Under the pieces are notes generated by a model. That model ran no database searches. It saw only the letters and a list, made by a program, of their open reading frames with translations, and was not told the DNA's origin. A program made the translations under genes and the position numbers. From Bugula neritina (lineage: Eukaryota; Animalia; Bryozoa): a stretch of DNA of 64,000 nt. The DNA is taken from assembly GCA_964035545.1 (NCBI GenBank), contig OZ037773.1, forward strand, positions 2,943,751-3,007,750, given 5' to 3'. This document shows positions 1,340-38,200 of the stretch, piece after piece (the first letter of the stretch is position 1; each line of letters opens with the position of its first letter).

Positions 1340-3435
<2,096 letters not shown>

Positions 3436-21800: not shown

Positions 21801-24800
21801 CAGCAGTGCCTATTTGAGTGTTCAGCCTGCAGCAGGTGAATTGTGTTATATACTCAGACTATATATCAGTGTTGTGTGCAGGTAACTACTGTGTGTACAT
21901 ACTCAGACTACAGTACTGTACATGTAACCAATGTAATAATACTGTAACTTGTCATTTCTGTGATAAAATGAGAATTTAATGAGAATAGACTCCTTGCACT
22001 AATTTAACCAGTAATTACTTTGAAGCATCTGTAGTGATATGTCTTAGTCAAACATTTTCAATTATCAGTTAGAGTTAATCTGGTACTAGATCAGCAGTTC
22101 TATTGGCTGCTTTCACTTCTTATCCAGCAGCTCAAACCCTCCTCCCTCATATATTATATTTACTCTGATTTTTCTGGAGGGGAAACTGTTTTTCTAGCTG
22201 ACTATGCAGTACCAGTACAATTATAACCAGTTACCCTAAACTTTTGTTATTGAAAAAAATACAGCTCAAGGCATATATGAATGTAAGAAGTCAATGATAT
22301 GCTGTATCATTGGTATTGGAGCTGTATTGACCATGCCTGTGGTGTCACTTGCTAATTGTCAATACCACAGAACCTTTGTTACACTTCTGCTAGTGTTGAT
22401 GTGTTGAAAGTCTGCTAGTGTTGATGTGTTGAAAGTCTGCTAGTATTGATGTGTTGAAAGTCTGCTAGTATTGATGTGTTGAAAGTCTGCTAGTGTTGAT
22501 GTGTTGCACGTCTGCTAGTGTTGATGTGTTGAAAGTCTACTAGTGTTGAAATGTTGAAAGTCTGCTAGTGTTGATGTGTTGAAAGTCTGCTAGTGTTGAA
22601 ATGTTGAAAGTCTGCTAGTGTTGATGTGTTGACCTCTGCTAGTGTTAAACATAGTCTGCTAGTTTTAAACGTCTGCTCTGTTGACTCAGTGAAATCAATC
22701 TCTCTTCTCCCTCATGTTTAATTCAGGAGATGCCTCAGTCAAGAACGTAAGCATTGAAGTGGCCTTTAGCAGTTGTTTATTGACTCTTAACTCAGTCACA
22801 GTCCTTAGCTCTGTCATAGACATATAATACTGTTAGCTTAAGCATATGCTGGCTGTCCCTCATAGCTGGATATAAACTAACAGCTGACTCTGTTTGTGTC
22901 TTCCACTCTCTACTCCCCTCCTCTCTCTCACTACCACTCCACTCTCTCTACTCCCCCTCCTCTCTCTCACTCCCCTCCACTCTCTCACTACCCCTCCACT
23001 CTCTACTCCCCTCCACTCTCTCACTCCCCTCCTCTCTCTCTCTCCACCTCCTCCACTCCCTGATTCCCCCACTATCTTTCTCTTCACTCCACTCCCTCAC
23101 TTCCCCTCCACTCCTTTTCTCTTCACTTCACTCAATCTCTCCTTCACCCCCCCCACTCCCATCACAGGCAGATGTTTAAACCTTTATTACCAATCTGCAT
23201 AATTCCATTGAGTATGCATGTAGAAGTTGTATTACACAGATGGCAGGCTGTAAACGTGATAATAGTCACAAAAGTTTTGTAACTATGTATTCATAATGCA
23301 ATTAAATATCTATATATTTCAGTTATATAAGTAAACAAGATGAGATGACAATGCTCTTATATAGAACATAAATATATACACTGGGTGTGGGCACATAAAT
23401 ATCTTATTCTAATAACTAATGTGGTTAGCTTTTAATAGAATTAGCAAACAAATAACAAAGGTCACTGTAAGTTATAGTTAGAGATGTCCCAATCTTTTGT
23501 ACTCATAGATATGTGTGCATATTGATTATTTTATTGCAATCAGGTAAAGCAAAACAACAGCAGTGTTTATGTACACTAGTCCATGGCTGTTGCCATCTGA
23601 TAAATAAAGATATCTGCTGGTGATCTATCAATTAGTTTGATGGAAGAAAGACTATCAACACACAAACTATTAAATTTATCTCTCACTCTATTAGTGTTGA
23701 GACACAAGATTGTTGGTCTAGAGATCAATGTTTTTGTCGGTTAAGAAAAATTGTAACTTTTCCAGAGCTTTTATGTATAAATACACCAGTACTTTATTTT
23801 GGCTATTTTTCTTGATTATGAAGATGAGCCTGCAATTGAATGATTAACCTAGATTAAAATCACAGTTGGTAGAATCGTTTGCTCTTGGTGAAGCCCGAAC
23901 TGATGTTGTATAATATATGCAGTGTGAACTGTCAACAGAGAGGCTATGTGAAATATATTCACTTTCCATAAGCCAATAGTTTTGATGCAAAAAAAGCTGA
24001 AAATATAATGACAGGTTTCTACTAATTATTTATGTTATCTGACAATCACGGAAAAACCAACAACCAATGTCTGACTTCTACACAATGAGGATTGTTATTG
24101 TGCGCGTTATTTTATCACGTAATTTACCTGGGCGTCTATTCTTTTTCACTTGTAGGTGGGTCCACTGCTCCAGCCTTTATTGTTAGACCGAGAGATGTGT
24201 CTGTGAAGAAGGGCTCCAAGGCTATCCTCTACTGTGCTGTCACCGGACTGGGTGCTAGTGGCAACAAGCCGGTGCTGACATGGCTTCGATCTGGCAGCAC
24301 AATCAACATAGCTGAGTATGTCTCTCATACAACATATTACATGCCACATAAAGCTTTTCAATTTTAACACAAACCAAAGTTTGAAAAAGTCAGTTGGGAA
24401 ATAAGCAGTTTTTTATATCGTATTTAGAGTTGGCTCCTTTTCAAGTCTGTAGGTTATGAGAGATGGCTTTGGGTTATTATTTCATGCGTATATGTATTTA
24501 TTTATAATACACTGTATATGTATTCATACATATAACACTGTGTATGTATTCATATATAATACACTGTATATGTATTCATATATATTACACTGTATATGTT
24601 ATTCATATATATTACACTGTATATGTATTCATATATATTACACTGTATATGTATTCATATATATTACACTGTATATGTATTTATATATATATTACACTGT
24701 ATATGTATTCATATATAATACACTGTATATGTATTCATATATAATACACTGTATATGTATTCATATATATTACACTGTATATGTATTTATATATATATAT

Positions 24801-27800
24801 TACACTGTATATGTATTTATATATACTACACTGTGTATGTATTCATATATATTACGCTGTATATGTATTCATATATATTACACTGTATATGCATTTATAT
24901 ATATTACACTGTGTATGTATTCATATATAATACACTGTATATGTATTCATATATATTACACTGTATATGTATTCATATATATTACACTGTATATGTATTT
25001 ATATATATATTACACTGTATATGTATTCATATATAATACACTGTATATGTATTCATATATAATACACTGTATATGTATTCATATATATTACACTGTATAT
25101 GTATTTATATATATATATATTACACTGTATATGTATTTATATATACTACACTGTGTATGTATTCATATATATTACGCTGTATATGTATTCATATATATTA
25201 CACTGTATATGCATTTATATATATTACACTGTGTATGTATTCATATATAATACACTGTATATGTATTCATATATATTACACTGTATATGTATTCATTTAT
25301 ATATTACATTGTATATGCATTCATTTATATTACACTGTATATGTATTCATGTCCATTACACAGTATATTATTTATTTATATTACACCATGTTATATTCTT
25401 ACCACAAAGGAGTGGCGGCCACTATCAGTTGCTGGGGGGTGGATCCTTACAGATAAACAATGTTGGGCCTGCAGATGAAGGTAAATACACATGCAGGGGA
25501 GATAACTTGATTGACATATCAGATGCCGAGGCTACAGTTACTGTACTCGGTAAGTATTTTTTCTAATAGTTGCTTAACTTTTCCCATCATCTAATGATAA
25601 CCTAGAAATCTTATTTCTCCAGTATATCTTCCAGTATATGATTTGTCGGTTGCTATCTATTGGTGTCAGTTTTAAAACGTGTACTAATTGGTCAACTTAA
25701 TACAAAATGCTAAGTTATTGTTAAGTTAGTTTTCATTTTCACAAGTTACTTACAAATTGTCATTGCACTACTTTCTTCGTCTGCTTGCAGTTGCTCCGTA
25801 CTTCGCCACGAGACCTGCCAACACCGATGCCTATGTGAATGGAGATGCTGAACTCAAATGTGACATCAGAGGTTATCCGCTTCCCACTGTGTCTTGGCTC
25901 AAGGTATCTGCACACTTTCTTCTCCCCTTTTCACCCTTCTCTCCTTTCCTGCTCTCTTTCTGCCCCTTTCCTCCATCCCCCCTCTCTCCTTTCTCCCTCT
26001 CCCTTCTCCCCCTTCTGCTTCCTTTTCCCTTCTCCCTCTCTCTCCTTTCTCTCTCCCTTCTCTCTCCTTGCTCTCTCCCTTCTCTCCCTTCTCTCCCTTC
26101 TTCCCATCCAGTCTATCAAGTATACAGTGTAGTAATGTATGCTACTTTTTGTATCATAGTTCATATATATTTATATAATAGCTGCAGATACTCCTACTAG
26201 CTGCAGATTTACGTCGTAATGCAATTAGTTTGACAACATCATTCTCGTAACGTGCCTGAAGATGTAGCCAATGTTTTTCATCTTTTAATTTTCACTGAAA
26301 TTGAGTTTGTTACACTGTCACAATGACCCTCCTCACTGTTGTCTATTTTATAGAACTCCAACTATGTAAACATAGACCAGTACTCTCGCATGGTGGGAGG
26401 TAATTTAAAGACGATGGCACTCATGCCATCAGACGCCGGGTATTACCAGTGCATTGGGGTAAACTCAGTGGGTTCTGTATACGCCACTGCTGAGCTGACC
26501 GTACTAGTAGATGGAGGTATGTTTTTAGTTCCCTCTATCTGAGTTACAAGGTGAAGGTGGATTTTAACTATTTGAGTCATAGTAACTTATACATAAGCAT
26601 ATTGAGGTAATCGTAAAATATAATGAATTCCAAGTATTTGAATTAAGATAAAATGTAGTTCTTGAGAGACTTGCTATTTACTTATCACCATTGGCTATGC
26701 TGTGCATGTTGTTTTTCTATTATTTTGAAACTTCTCATTTAAAATCAGTTAAATTTAGTTCTGTTTCAAGTAGAAAGTTAAATAGTGTCTATATTTGTTG
26801 CTGCCTTCAGATGCTGACACAGTGAGCACTGTATCCCGGTCACCTCTAGACCTGACCAACTACACGCATTCAGGGCTGCCGCTGCCACCAGCCTCCCTGC
26901 AGGCTGTCCTGATATCATATACCTACATCACTTTGAGCTGGGAGAGCTCCAGTACACCTGAGATACCTGTCAGTGGCTACACTGTGTCAGCTGTCTCCTT
27001 GTCTGACCCGGCAGCCAGTGCAAGGTGGGTGTAAAAACTGACAGCCAGTATAAGGCGGGTGTCAAAGTGACACATGGTGCAAGGTAAGTGTAAAAACTGA
27101 CAGCCAGTGCAAGGTGAGTGTAAAAACTGACAGCCAGCACAAAGTGGGTGAGAAAACTGGCAGATAGTGCAAAGTGACCGCTGTGGTTCAGCCAGAGATC
27201 AATAATTAATGGAGCAGTTTAAAGTAGTGACGTTTTACTATCTACACATGATAACAATGAACATACTGGTGTTGCTACTTTAGACTGAGAACTGCATCAA
27301 CAACATCTACAGACTACACTATGCAAGGCCTTCAACCCGACACAAACTATCTGTTCAGGATTTATGCCTATAACTCTAAAGGCAGGAGCCTTGCTAGTCA
27401 GGTACATGTATTCTGCTTGTGGAATATTTTAAAAATATATGTGCGAGTTATAGTTTTTGGAGAAGATTAAAGATATCCTGACAGTTCTTGGATTTTATTG
27501 GTCTGATTATTTGCTGTATATAATTTTTCTGACATGTTGATTCATATTGTGGAAATCTCTTTATAAAAATCGTAACTCAGGAATCAATTGGCCTGTGATG
27601 AGTGATGATGTTGTACTAATAATATAATGATTATATTATATCAAGATAAAGATGTAGTAATAGTAGTAATGTTACTGGGATGAGCTCACATTTTGAGTAA
27701 AGTCCATCTATCCCCGCATCCCCCCCCCCCCCCCCCGCCTAGTAGAGCTAAGTCACTAGTAGAAGCCTGCATCAGCAAAGTGCTGAGATACAACTAATAT

Positions 27801-33800: not shown

Positions 33801-34215
33801 AGGCCAGTTGACTTTTGTACAATATTATAGGACTTTCTACCAGTCTAGGGAGAAAAACTAACTATTCTCATAAAAGGAATGCTCAGTCTGGTTAGAAGGA
33901 CTGTTATTGCCAGTCTAAGAGAAAGATGCTTTCTCCATATGTCGCAACAGTCTGTTAGAACCAGACGATAGGTGTGACTGGACTCTGGTTTGTTATACCT
34001 GCTTAAGGTAATAATTGATCATTTCTCATGGCTGTGTTTTAGCACCGGCCACTGCCCCCGCTGACCTCACTGTCAGCAGTTCAGACAGAGGTCATGGGTA
34101 TGTGCACATCAGCTGGCAGCCTCCCAGTCAACCAAATGGTAACATAATAAGCTACCAGATATTCTCCAGCACTGACGATACTCTGCCGATAAAGCAATGG
34201 GCTAGAGATGGTATG

Positions 34216-34246
<31 letters not shown>

Positions 34247-34864
34247 GTGTCTGTATAGAATGATATAAATTAAAAGGAATATAAATTAAAAATAATGTAA
34301 AACAAGCTTGCGCAAGTTTATAGTCGCCATCCCTGTGAGAAACCCCTGAGGGAAAGGGTTTTTGTTAGAACGGGTTAAGGAGTTCTTCATATGAATATGT
34401 GGCACATGAGCAATTGTGACTGGATGCTCTTTTTAATATCATCAATGTCGGGGTTTCGAACCCATGACTTCGTGTTTACTAAGCAAATGCTCTAACCTCT
34501 AGACCACGGCTGCTCCCTAAAATTAAAAATAATATAGGTGCTGCTAAACTTTTTTTACTACACTGCGTTGTGTGTTCCGTTGTAAGTTGTTGCTGCAGGA
34601 ATTGTTTGCCCTTATTGAGACTTGTTTGTTGCAGCTGCTGTTGGGAGCTCCCTCAACTATCAGTATGGGCAGGTGACTCCCAACACCCGCTACTATTTCC
34701 TCATAGTTGCTCAAACAAAGGTTGGCAGTTCTCCTGCCTCAGAAGTTGTGTCCTTCAAAACCCCCAAAGGTATGTGGCTGAGGTTCCCATAGCAATCACA
34801 CATAACTTCTTTATTCTCTCTGCTGCTTATATTTTTATATTATTTATTTTTTATATGTTCAATT

Positions 34865-34961
<97 letters not shown>

Positions 34962-35246
34962 ATATATATAATGTATGCTGATTGTCAATCTAGTTGGAGT
35001 TCCAGCAAAGTAAAGTGCTCGATATCACGGGTGACAGAGCTAATATAATGTAGTGTGTTCAGATTGTTAATGATACATATATATTTTTTTATTTAAAAAA
35101 TCTCACACGACTATATAGTTTCGTACAGTAAACTGCACTCGTCAGGTGTTAGACTAAAAATAAATAAAATCTATGAAGCATACCGATTATTCAAATTTTT
35201 TAAATAAAAAAAAATATATGTATCATTAACAATCTGAACACACTAC

Positions 35247-35287
<41 letters not shown>

Positions 35288-38200
35288 TTCATATTTAAAT
35301 ATATCAATAAATATATATTTATATATATTTTATATTGCATATTTTCTAATATTTTTATATTATATATAATATATAAATATATTATATTTCTTCAATACTC
35401 ATAGTTAATTAACTTTAAATAGTTTATTCACAGTTGATTTATTGGTTTTAAATTTTGCAATAGCAATGTAGTTATATGACCCCCCCCCCCCCCCCTTAAG
35501 CTTGAAGTGTGAATTTATTAGAGTGGACAATTTGTACTGTCTTCAATGTCTGTTACTTTATTTTTGCAGCTGATAGAAAATCAACATTTCTAGAAGGTGT
35601 ATCCACAGGTAACTATGATGTCATTTCCTTATTTTGTTGGTTTCCCTGATTGATGTCTAGATGAAGTATTCAATGTTTATGCTTATTTTTGAGATGTTGA
35701 GTTAAATTAATGAGTAATACATAGGCTCAATGTTGGCTATTATACATTTATTTTATTATTAAGATAATGTAGATATATAAAACAATGTAAACATGATGAA
35801 TATAAAACTCTGTGTGAGAAGTCTCTGCTGGAAGGTTTATTTTAATTTGGGCTAAGTACCTAATCAGATGTGACACAGGAGCAATTATGACTGGATGCTC
35901 TTCCTTTGTTGGGGTTCGAACTCGTGCCGTCTTTTTACTAAGCAAAAGCTGTAACCCCTAGACCACGGCTGCTCCCTTAAACATGATGCGTATAATATCT
36001 AGTAAATAAAGCAGTGTATGAATGTTATACTCCGCAAGTGAACATAACCTTACTATTGTATGTTTACTTGTCGCTGCAGTTGGCGTCATCTCTGAACCCG
36101 TAGACCCCAGTCTCTCTCTGCTCCAGAAGTCTCCATATCTGATTTGGATTATAATCGTGTCGGTGGCTGTTATATCTATAATAGCCATCGCTGTCATCAC
36201 TGCTGTGCTCTGCTGCCGGAAGAACAAGTCTACGAAGCAGCAGCGGTCACCTGCGAAGCACACAACTCAACCCCCTGATCTGGTCGCCAAACCAAACCCA
36301 CCAGATCTCTGGATCGACCACGAACGAGTAAGTGTGGTTTGGGAGGGGAAGGGAAGGGGTGGAGAGAGTAAGTCTGGCTTGGCAGGTGAAGGGGGAGAAA
36401 GTTGAAGGGGTGGAGAGAGTAGTTTTCCTGCACTGAGCCGATGTGAATAAATGACACAAACTTGATCTTTAATTTCAATAATCGTTTTAGCTCTTATGAG
36501 TTACCAACATTGAGACTAATTTGCTAGACTATTTCTTTTGATCAGTTTTGATTATTTTCTCATGCACTTACTGTTATGACTGTAGCATGAGTTGACCGGC
36601 CTGAGGCTACAGTCCGAGACAGATAACGAGACGGATGAGCGCACGTCCATGCTGCAGAGCAACTTTGATGTGAGTGTTAGTCTGGCTGGTGACATGACGT
36701 ATCCCGACGATATGAAGTTTTCTTCTCTTACAAGGAGCGGTCGTCCGGTTATAATAGCCTCCAATCCTCACAGAGATGGTGAGTTACGACAGCCCGCTCT
36801 CACACTGGGTGTGTAGCAGAGGGTGGTTTTCTTAAACGTAGTAGTTTACCTACATTGACATCATCTTAAAGCTGGGCTGCGCTGTTTATGTTGTACTGCT
36901 GTTTCATGCTACAATGTATACCAACGATGAGACATATTGAGTTCAGACAGTATAGCTCCGCAGTTCTATTTTGCTTTCCTTGCAAATATAATTATCTACA
37001 AAAGAACTAAAACTTATTTAAATTGCAAAGAAGCTGGTGGCCACAGTATGCTTTTCAGTTACTGTTTTAGTTCTATAAACCATCAACCTATCTTGTTAAG
37101 TTTTATCAAGTTTTACCATGACTACTTCCACTCGAATAACTTTCAGCAGTCACCTAACTTGGTCACTGAAGGAAAACTGAGCCACACTGACTCATCTACC
37201 AAAAACTGTCAGCAAATAGCTATCGCAAAAGCTTTCACAAATAGCTTTCGTTACACAATGATTTTTGGCAGCTTTCCAAAAAGCCACTGCAACAATTTGC
37301 GCTTTAGTTTCTAACTCCGAGTCTTTTATTGTTGAACTGTAGCAATGCCAAGAGCTTCTGTGACTCCTATGACGGCTGATTCGACGCGACCTCTGTATCC
37401 AAGGACACAGTTTGCTAGCGGAGGTCAACACGGAGCTACTCCCAGGGTTCATGTTGGAGATACCTCCCAGCCCAGTTCAGGTAACTACTGCTTCCACGTC
37501 ATGTCAGCTGTTCTAAATGAGGGTTTCTTGTGGCAGCCATATTTTCTCGGTAGCCATATTTTCTTCCGCTGCAAACTCTCCACTCGGCAAAAGTTCAAAC
37601 ACATTTCACAAAATTAACTCAAAAATTGAATGAAATTTTGCCATTTGTATTTTGAATGATTTTTAAAATTATAGTACAATAACTTACCATTCTCTGCTCA
37701 GCACTTATTAATAAACTAGCCGGAAAATTTGCCAAGAGAAACTTGCACTCCCTTCACCATGTAATGTTGCAGTAACTTATGTTAGTTACTCACTTTAAGG
37801 GTTTGCTGAAGTGTTTCCAACATTTGATAATATCGCAAGATATTCTCCTGTGTATTTGAGCTTCAGTAGCTCGTAAAATTTTTCCAAGTTTATATGTAAA
37901 TTAATATAGTTATATCTATATTGTGTAGTCCCAGAAAGCTTTGTCACTGCATGGGTACACCATTTGCTTCTGCTGAAAATGCACGATGTATATGGACACA
38001 CTTCATTTATCCAGTTCCACCACTAATTACTGTGTGTCACATTTCCACAGCATGCTAAAAGTACACTTGCTGCTGCTATTGTCTTGATACATCTACCTTA
38101 TGTATCTCATCTACTTTAAAGATGGTTTATCCAGGTTAATCTACCTCAATTTACACAGCGCTATATCCTGTTTAATTTATGTTCTAGCAGACTTTCTGAT

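Follow-up and report, generated by a model that had tools for sequence, protein, structure and literature searches.

The locus and its host gene

The window, by which is meant the whole 64-kb stretch of DNA that was analysed, encodes Ig and FN3 exons of a receptor gene on its plus strand. The last FN3 exon (within the open frame 34015-34263) finds its best match among solved structures in FN5-6 of DCC and neogenin, with an E value of 1e-9. The transmembrane exon is followed in the same open frame by PPDLWI, which we take to resemble the P1 motif of DCC; a Pfam search of this open frame (36022-36405) returned no match. Farther upstream, at 24456-25566 (plus), an intron separating two Ig exons of this gene holds a long degenerate minisatellite that reads as YTVYVFIY-type repeats.

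The intron between an exon near 34622-34792 and the transmembrane exon contains an insertion of 289 nt (34965-35253) with (TA)n on both flanks, and a hammerhead motif lies within it (Table 1). The ribozyme strand is antisense to the receptor gene, therefore the ribozyme could act only on an antisense transcript. The sequence-only reading had already placed the motif antisense within a DCC/neogenin intron, and the match of the FN3 exon together with the opposite strand of the motif agrees with that placement. It had also proposed that the receptor pre-mRNA would be spared. This holds in that the plus strand of the window has no hammerhead, though the pre-mRNA would carry a hairpin: the inverted arms of the insertion (35043-35101 and 35195-35253; 59 bp, 98% complementary) would also fold there, as a long intronic dsRNA stem.

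Table 1. Features of the insertion, its hammerhead motif and the neighbouring host exons, in window coordinates
Feature	Position	Strand	Basis
Host exon (within an open frame) for the beginning of the last FN3 domain, DCC/neogenin-like receptor	34015..34263	plus	Pfam fn3; solved-structure match
(TA)n microsatellite, one flank (target tract)	34860..34964	none	sequence reading
"Tail": initial ~78 nt of the 5' UTR of a following unit, in the manner of a partial tandem, TTAGCTCTGTCACCC...ACATTAT, ending in (TA)n	34965..35043	minus	match to L047
Hydra-clade Penelope-like element: 3' UTR (5'-truncated) with the hammerhead inside, and 3' terminus, ending ...CTACATTATA	35044..35220	minus	collinear with L046 and L047
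Type I hammerhead ribozyme motif	35102..35152	minus	sequence reading, RF00163, sister-family covariance model
Helix I 5' strand CUAACAC	35152-35146	minus	sequence reading
Core CUGACGA	35145-35139	minus	sequence reading
Helix II 5' strand GUGCAG	35138-35133	minus	sequence reading
Helix II loop UUUA	35132-35129	minus	sequence reading
Helix II 3' strand CUGUAC	35128-35123	minus	sequence reading
Core GAAA	35122-35119	minus	sequence reading
Palindromic helix III segment CUAUAUAG	35118-35111	minus	sequence reading
UC after the helix III segment	35110-35109	minus	sequence reading
Predicted self-cleavage site, after C35109 of GUC	35108..35109	minus	hammerhead consensus, H17 rule
Helix I 3' strand GUGUGAG	35108-35102	minus	sequence reading
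Second 5'-truncated 3'-terminus copy, 59 nt, opposite orientation	35195..35253	plus	inverted-repeat and collinearity comparison
(TA)n microsatellite, other flank	35254..35282	none	sequence reading
Open frame with the host transmembrane exon, then PPDLWI	36022..36405	plus	translation

Anatomy of the insertion

The longer arm of the insertion is collinear with the 3' UTR of the genomic copy L046 over 179 nt, at 97% identity. Arm and tail together (minus strand, 35220 to 34965) are collinear with another copy, L047, over 257 nt at 95%, and the tail taken alone is 98.5% identical to the start of the L047 5' UTR. Neither an ORF nor an upstream pseudo-LTR is present in the insertion. Because a second 3' terminus of 59 nt lies on the plus strand, the insertion is made up of two copies, both severely 5'-truncated, that stand head to head and have a tail on one side. 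The inner boundary of the 59-nt copy is ambiguous by about 25 nt, since the element has an imperfect internal inverted repeat at this place.

Variations in the way that copies end were observed among the fetched loci. Of the 33 distinct termini, 13 are followed at once by (TA)n and 16 by the tail, and what follows the remaining 4 also starts with TATA. Both alternative ends, with the tail or without it, finish in ACATTAT(A), and these shared ends suggest that priming occurs on the TA tract by microhomology.

Structure of the hammerhead motif

The hammerhead motif in the window is real and intact. Its core set is complete, with CUGANGA present as CUGACGA, with GAAA, with A15.1 and U16.1 in place, and with C at H17. 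Helix I is long, consisting of 4 bp, a 1x1 loop and 5 bp. The loop is a single A.G mismatch in which 35150 stands opposite 35104, and the outward extension of about 5 pairs (AGUCU/AGAUU) reaches 35098-35156. Helix II has six pairs, one of which is G.U. The helix III segment is a perfect 8-nt palindrome, and in the monomer it forms a helix of 2 bp (C-G and U-A) that closes a 4-nt loop. The cleavage triplet GUC occupies 35111-35109 of the minus strand, which puts the predicted scissile bond at 35109/35108. Apart from the mismatch and the extension of helix I and the G.U pair of helix II, which add to it, these features coincide with those of the sequence-only reading: the full core that it had described on the minus strand (CUGACGA, GAAA and GUC) can be read at 35152-35102, stems I and II and the short palindromic stem III are present where it had put them, and the triplet places the predicted bond between the two nucleotides that it had named.

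Rfam scores, genomic copies and covariation

The Rfam model RF00163 (Hammerhead_1) aligns to the motif over its full length with 26.3 bits and an E value of 5e-5 in a search of 86 nt. This falls short of the gathering score of 34 bits, a threshold that is curatorial and not biochemical. The score is low because the longer helix II and the mismatch in helix I cost bits. The motif was not reported by Rfam when the whole window was scanned at the gathering threshold, nor when 701 nt were scanned with E values up to 10; the blank whole-window result follows from a score that lies below the gathering threshold. When the genome was searched with RF00163, 73 of 16,234 candidates were scored.

The 51-mer of the motif has 110 copies (53+57) in the 216-Mb genome when up to 3 mismatches are allowed, and 41 of these are identical to the copy in the window, whereas the reversed 51-mer, searched for in the same genome with the same tolerance, has no match. 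A covariance model (R2) for which only hammerheads of sister families were used, this family being left out, gives the motif 34.8 bits with an E value of 6e-6, and the motif is its sole match in the 64 kb on both strands. A further model, R1, scores the motif at 64.8 bits and also returns a single hammerhead; a second hammerhead was found in the 64-kb window with neither model, the plus strand included.

Covariation was assessed on 11 hammerheads from six families in a MAFFT alignment that was not fitted to the structure. The hammerhead structure pairs 86% of the cells of this alignment, against 26-50% when the partners are slid by 1-3 columns. Changes on both sides of a pair, that is compensatory changes, occur in 12 of the 18 hammerhead pairs, and the observed covariation was reached by none of 500 shuffled alignments. 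Covariation across the six sister families is seen in helices I and II. Only three differences separate the two main subfamilies: one at the free core position N7, one in a helix II pair that is G.U in one and G-C in the other, and one at the site of the helix I mismatch. The sequence-only reading had named a comparison with hammerhead models and a count of genomic copies with stem covariation as ways to check the motif, and both have come out in its favour, through the full-length, though sub-threshold, alignment to RF00163 and the independent sister-family model on the one hand and the copies and compensatory changes on the other.

The parent element

The same 3' end follows open frames of 700-708 aa at three genomic loci (L046, L047 and L048). 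These frames end about 170 nt upstream of the ribozyme-bearing repeat unit, and in the focal family the ribozyme core begins 243 nt past the stop codon. Between inverted pairs of 3' ends there are frames that contain YRDD together with a GIY-YIG-like block. The L047 copy is a unit of about 2.6 kb that encodes a 699-aa protein which, judged by motifs and homologues, is a reverse transcriptase with a C-terminal GIY-YIG domain. The motifs of its ORF are RWK at position 46, DKT at 124, YRDD at 353, CxCx5C at 567, YVG at 603, CxxC at 667 and CxH at 696; YRDD is motif C of reverse transcriptases, the YVG...R..NH block is GIY-YIG-like, and a CCHH motif is absent from the ORF as judged by eye. A local Pfam scan of the 708-aa ORF gave no match, and it is for this reason that the reverse transcriptase and GIY-YIG assignments rest on motifs and homologues. 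A Pfam GIY-YIG match was obtained among the ORFs scanned and was set aside, as it belongs to a different, adjoining element and not to the focal family. Public data contain 2510 homologues; these are about 700 aa long, and the contigs that encode them measure about 2.4 kb. PF26215/PF28514 are found in homologues, and one carries PF01541, the Pfam GIY-YIG family. The best named protein relatives are from a bivalve and a bryozoan, at about 50% identity.

L047 (region of G000:C3:12879899) is the sole copy of the focal family that keeps the 5' UTR and the start of the ORF. All other matches to a 401-nt probe begin at position 190 or beyond. As only L047 keeps the 5' region, the focal family consists almost wholly of 5'-truncated copies.

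Craig, Yushenova, Rodriguez and Arkhipova (2021, PMC8557442) describe the Hydra clade of Penelope-like elements as shorter than 3 kb, with a C-terminal GIY-YIG domain and canonical hammerheads that are readily detected, and state that almost all of its families insert into (TA)n. The clade motifs given there are RWK, DKT instead of DKG, CxCx5C, and CxxC and CxH around a conserved E and N, with no CCHH. The element found here has RWK, DKT and not DKG, the CxCx5C linker, CxxC/CxH, a length below 3 kb and (TA)n targets. Judged by these published motifs, its length, its targets and its hammerhead, the parent is classed as a Hydra-clade Penelope-like element. The proposal of the sequence-only reading that this is a minimal type I hammerhead of the Penelope-like type is borne out by the 95-97% collinearity of the insertion with the 3' UTR of an element that has reverse transcriptase and GIY-YIG motifs. 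In the same paper hammerheads are reported to be universal in the Hydra clade, and their function in Penelope-like elements is called unclear.

Copies of the family and its sister families

A search with the repeat unit gave at least 84 matches, from 40 scored of 169 candidates. Most genomic copies are without the left arm and match unit positions 34/37-211. The copies often occur as diverging inverted pairs that are 0.3-2 kb apart, and the shortest arms in such pairs measure 59 nt, whereas the longest exceed 1.7 kb. Many hammerheads were also observed in head-to-head pairs that are 0-20 nt apart (for example at C2:5948892-5949021, C3:9127644-9127783 and C3:11418436-11418555). Extreme 5' truncation of both arms is therefore common, and the copy in the window is one point on a continuum.

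At least six young Hydra-clade families were sampled in this genome, each with a covarying ribozyme of its own. Among the sister-family loci, 18 have a frame with the conserved C-terminal motif at its end, and in every one of them the hammerhead lies 75-260 nt past the stop codon. It is at +272 from the stop in a truncated copy, L065, and it was not found in two truncated sister-family loci. In sister families D and E the loci L052, L055 and L021 have U.U in place of the usual G10.1-C11.1, and helix I of family D is only about 3 bp; in these two families the hammerhead is perhaps weakened, or it relies on a different pairing. The starts of the upstream pseudo-LTRs in the sister families are variable and do not coincide with the cleavage site, thus the genome shows no cleavage footprint.

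Other elements with hammerheads or similar motifs are found next to copies of these families. A different Penelope-like element (L031:1540-3165) adjoins a terminus of the focal family. It forms a 760-nt head-to-head pair with 99% identity and has a GIY-YIG ORF that Pfam detects (1915-2487, minus), and at 3042-3079 of the same locus there is a hammerhead-like motif whose helix I is poor. At L033 (minus, ~1291-1847), and also at L003, L004 and L022, tandem units with a spacing of 251-271 nt adjoin Penelope-like copies. Each unit has a different type I hammerhead, CUGAUGAG-GGGA-CAAA-UCCC-GAAAC...GUC, and is retrozyme-like.

Activity and RNA evidence

In the energy model the hammerhead fold of the monomer has -10.3 kcal/mol, compared with -14.5 kcal/mol for the minimum free energy fold, and the cofolding of two motifs gives a generic swapped duplex. 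In vitro studies of type I motifs with a short helix III found no detectable cleavage by a single motif and little by dimers, and hammerheads of this kind are reported to need a second copy for cleavage (PMC4209133). Since the hammerhead in the window stands alone and has a helix III of 2 bp, cleavage of the monomer is expected to be poor. On these grounds self-cleavage by the window copy alone appears doubtful.

The RNA data consist of Logan assembled contigs from runs that were only guessed to be RNA. Two small putative RNA runs from different studies contain contigs of 1.1-1.5 kb from the element ORF at about 98% identity, whose strand and ends are unreadable. These putative RNA contigs are consistent with expression of the element family. 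A peak of depth over the ribozyme bin does not come from the focal family; it was traced to an old degenerate fragment at C1:13640888 and was discarded. That locus (L069, G000:C1:13639388-13642417) has the old, degenerate 3' fragment of an element at about 1500-1700 of its minus strand, some 350 nt from a putative signal-peptide exon of a putative secreted-protein gene on the other strand. In two putative RNA runs the fragment has 10-25x the depth of the element ORF, and its contigs pass through the ribozyme uncut.

Origin of the motif and alternative explanations

The hammerhead is very probably the 3' UTR (pseudo-LTR) ribozyme of a young Hydra-clade family, and the copy in the window a 289-nt (TA)n insertion that was dead on arrival. 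Such a copy would have arisen when two 5'-truncated 3' ends (59 nt and about 177 nt) were joined head to head; the ribozyme is on the longer arm, as is the 78-nt tail, which would be a copy of the beginning of a following unit. Published work suggests that in the life cycle of the element precursor transcripts, long or in tandem, would be cut at GUC by the ribozyme, and that two ribozymes would pair through the palindromic helix III segment to give an active dimer. At the window locus cleavage would require that the insertion be transcribed antisense to the receptor, and it would probably also need a second family transcript as a partner in trans. The ribozyme in the window is most likely a neutral and inert passenger of the intron.

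Other origins have to be weighed against this one. That AT-rich DNA matched the hammerhead consensus by chance has almost nothing in its favour beyond the score under the Rfam gathering threshold and the blank scans of the whole window; we give it next to no credence and reject it on the 110 copies against zero for the control, the covariation, and the E value of 6e-6 from a model to which the window did not contribute. It is also extremely improbable that the insertion is a MITE in which a hammerhead occurs by happenstance. The 59-bp terminal inverted repeats look perfect, and the TA-rich flanks could hide a TA target duplication; however, the left arm is not common to the other copies, most of which match only the part of the unit given above, the arms grow to kilobases and hold an ORF for a reverse transcriptase rather than for a transposase, and the asymmetric tail on one side is typical of Penelope-like insertions. 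The MITE was rejected on the unshared left arm, the range of arm lengths (59 nt to >1.7 kb) and the reverse transcriptase of the parent.

An origin as a non-autonomous retrozyme (a short hammerhead element that has no coding capacity and is propagated as circular RNA by Penelope-like machinery) deserves somewhat more attention and is still very unlikely. The copy in the window is indeed short and non-coding and has a hammerhead, the same genome has tandem units of about 270 nt with another hammerhead (L003/L033, spacing 251-271 nt), and it has been proposed that the pseudo-LTRs of Penelope-like elements and animal retrozymes are related (bioRxiv 10.64898/2026.07.22.740005). However, the insertion is collinear at 95-97% with the 3' UTR and the 5' UTR start of an element that bears an ORF, it has a single hammerhead and no tandem unit in the window, and the arm lengths form a continuum up to the copy that keeps its 5' region, as 5' truncation predicts. 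Exaptation concerns the present role of the sequence: a ribozyme or structured antisense RNA could regulate the DCC/neogenin-like gene by cutting an antisense transcript or through a 59-bp dsRNA signal. An intact core, an intronic location, and arms that would fold in transcripts of either strand all fit this idea, yet the ribozyme is identical to 41 other copies, which marks the insertion as young, so that selection is not needed to explain why it is intact, and similar head-to-head fragments are common throughout the genome. We hold exaptation to be highly unlikely, and assign the same slender chance to its specific form, in which the lone ribozyme and the 59-bp hairpin have been co-opted so that an antisense transcript is cleaved, as a trans-dimer with abundant transcripts of the family, or is diced. 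If co-option were true, expression of the DCC/neogenin-like receptor would be tied to the activity of a Penelope-like family.

Comparison with known systems

As a truncated copy of a Hydra-clade element, the insertion shares most of its features with systems that have been described. The parent resembles the Hydra-clade elements of PMC8557442 in its RWK, DKT, CxCx5C and CxxC/CxH motifs, its (TA)n insertion and its canonical hammerhead in the 3' region. Partial tandems and inverted 5'-truncated copies with a tail on one side are likewise described for Penelope-like elements in the Fig. 2 legend of that paper, although the tail in the legend is 30-40 bp and the one found here is about 78 nt. Metazoan Penelope-like hammerheads (Cervera and de la Pena 2014, PMC4209133) have the same type I topology, the same location in flanking repeats, a helix III of 1-2 bp and a palindromic loop that implies action as a dimer, and the genomes that carry them are similar in having many families per genome and in being rich in compensatory changes. 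The hammerhead in the window differs from the "min-HHR" of that study, in which helix III is fully absent, in that helix III is present and its segment is a perfect palindrome. It also differs from the hammerheads of that study in its long helix I, and two of the sister families here depart from them by having U.U at G10.1-C11.1. Animal non-LTR retrozymes (Cervera and de la Pena 2020, PMC7229834) are similar in the type I fold, the short helix III, the non-coding sequence and the proposed link to Penelope-like elements. In retrozymes, units of 170-400 nt are repeated in tandem and give rise to circular RNAs (PMC7229834); the window locus differs in being a single ribozyme in a truncated piece of an autonomous element.

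The position within the intron of a protein-coding gene recalls the intronic hammerheads of amniotes, the Rfam families HH9 and HH10. The amniote hammerheads are conserved, single-copy and in sense orientation, whereas the one in the window is antisense, multicopy and young; Rfam scans of the window motif gave no match to the HH9 and HH10 families.

Implications

The finding is an ordinary one. Hammerheads have already been reported as universal in the clade, and the footprint that its elements usually leave is a truncated head-to-head insertion in (TA)n. For annotation it is of consequence that ribozymes of this sort fall under the Rfam threshold and thus escape routine searches. The families of this genome, each with its own ribozyme, make up a compact natural data set on the role of the hammerhead in Penelope-like retrotransposition.
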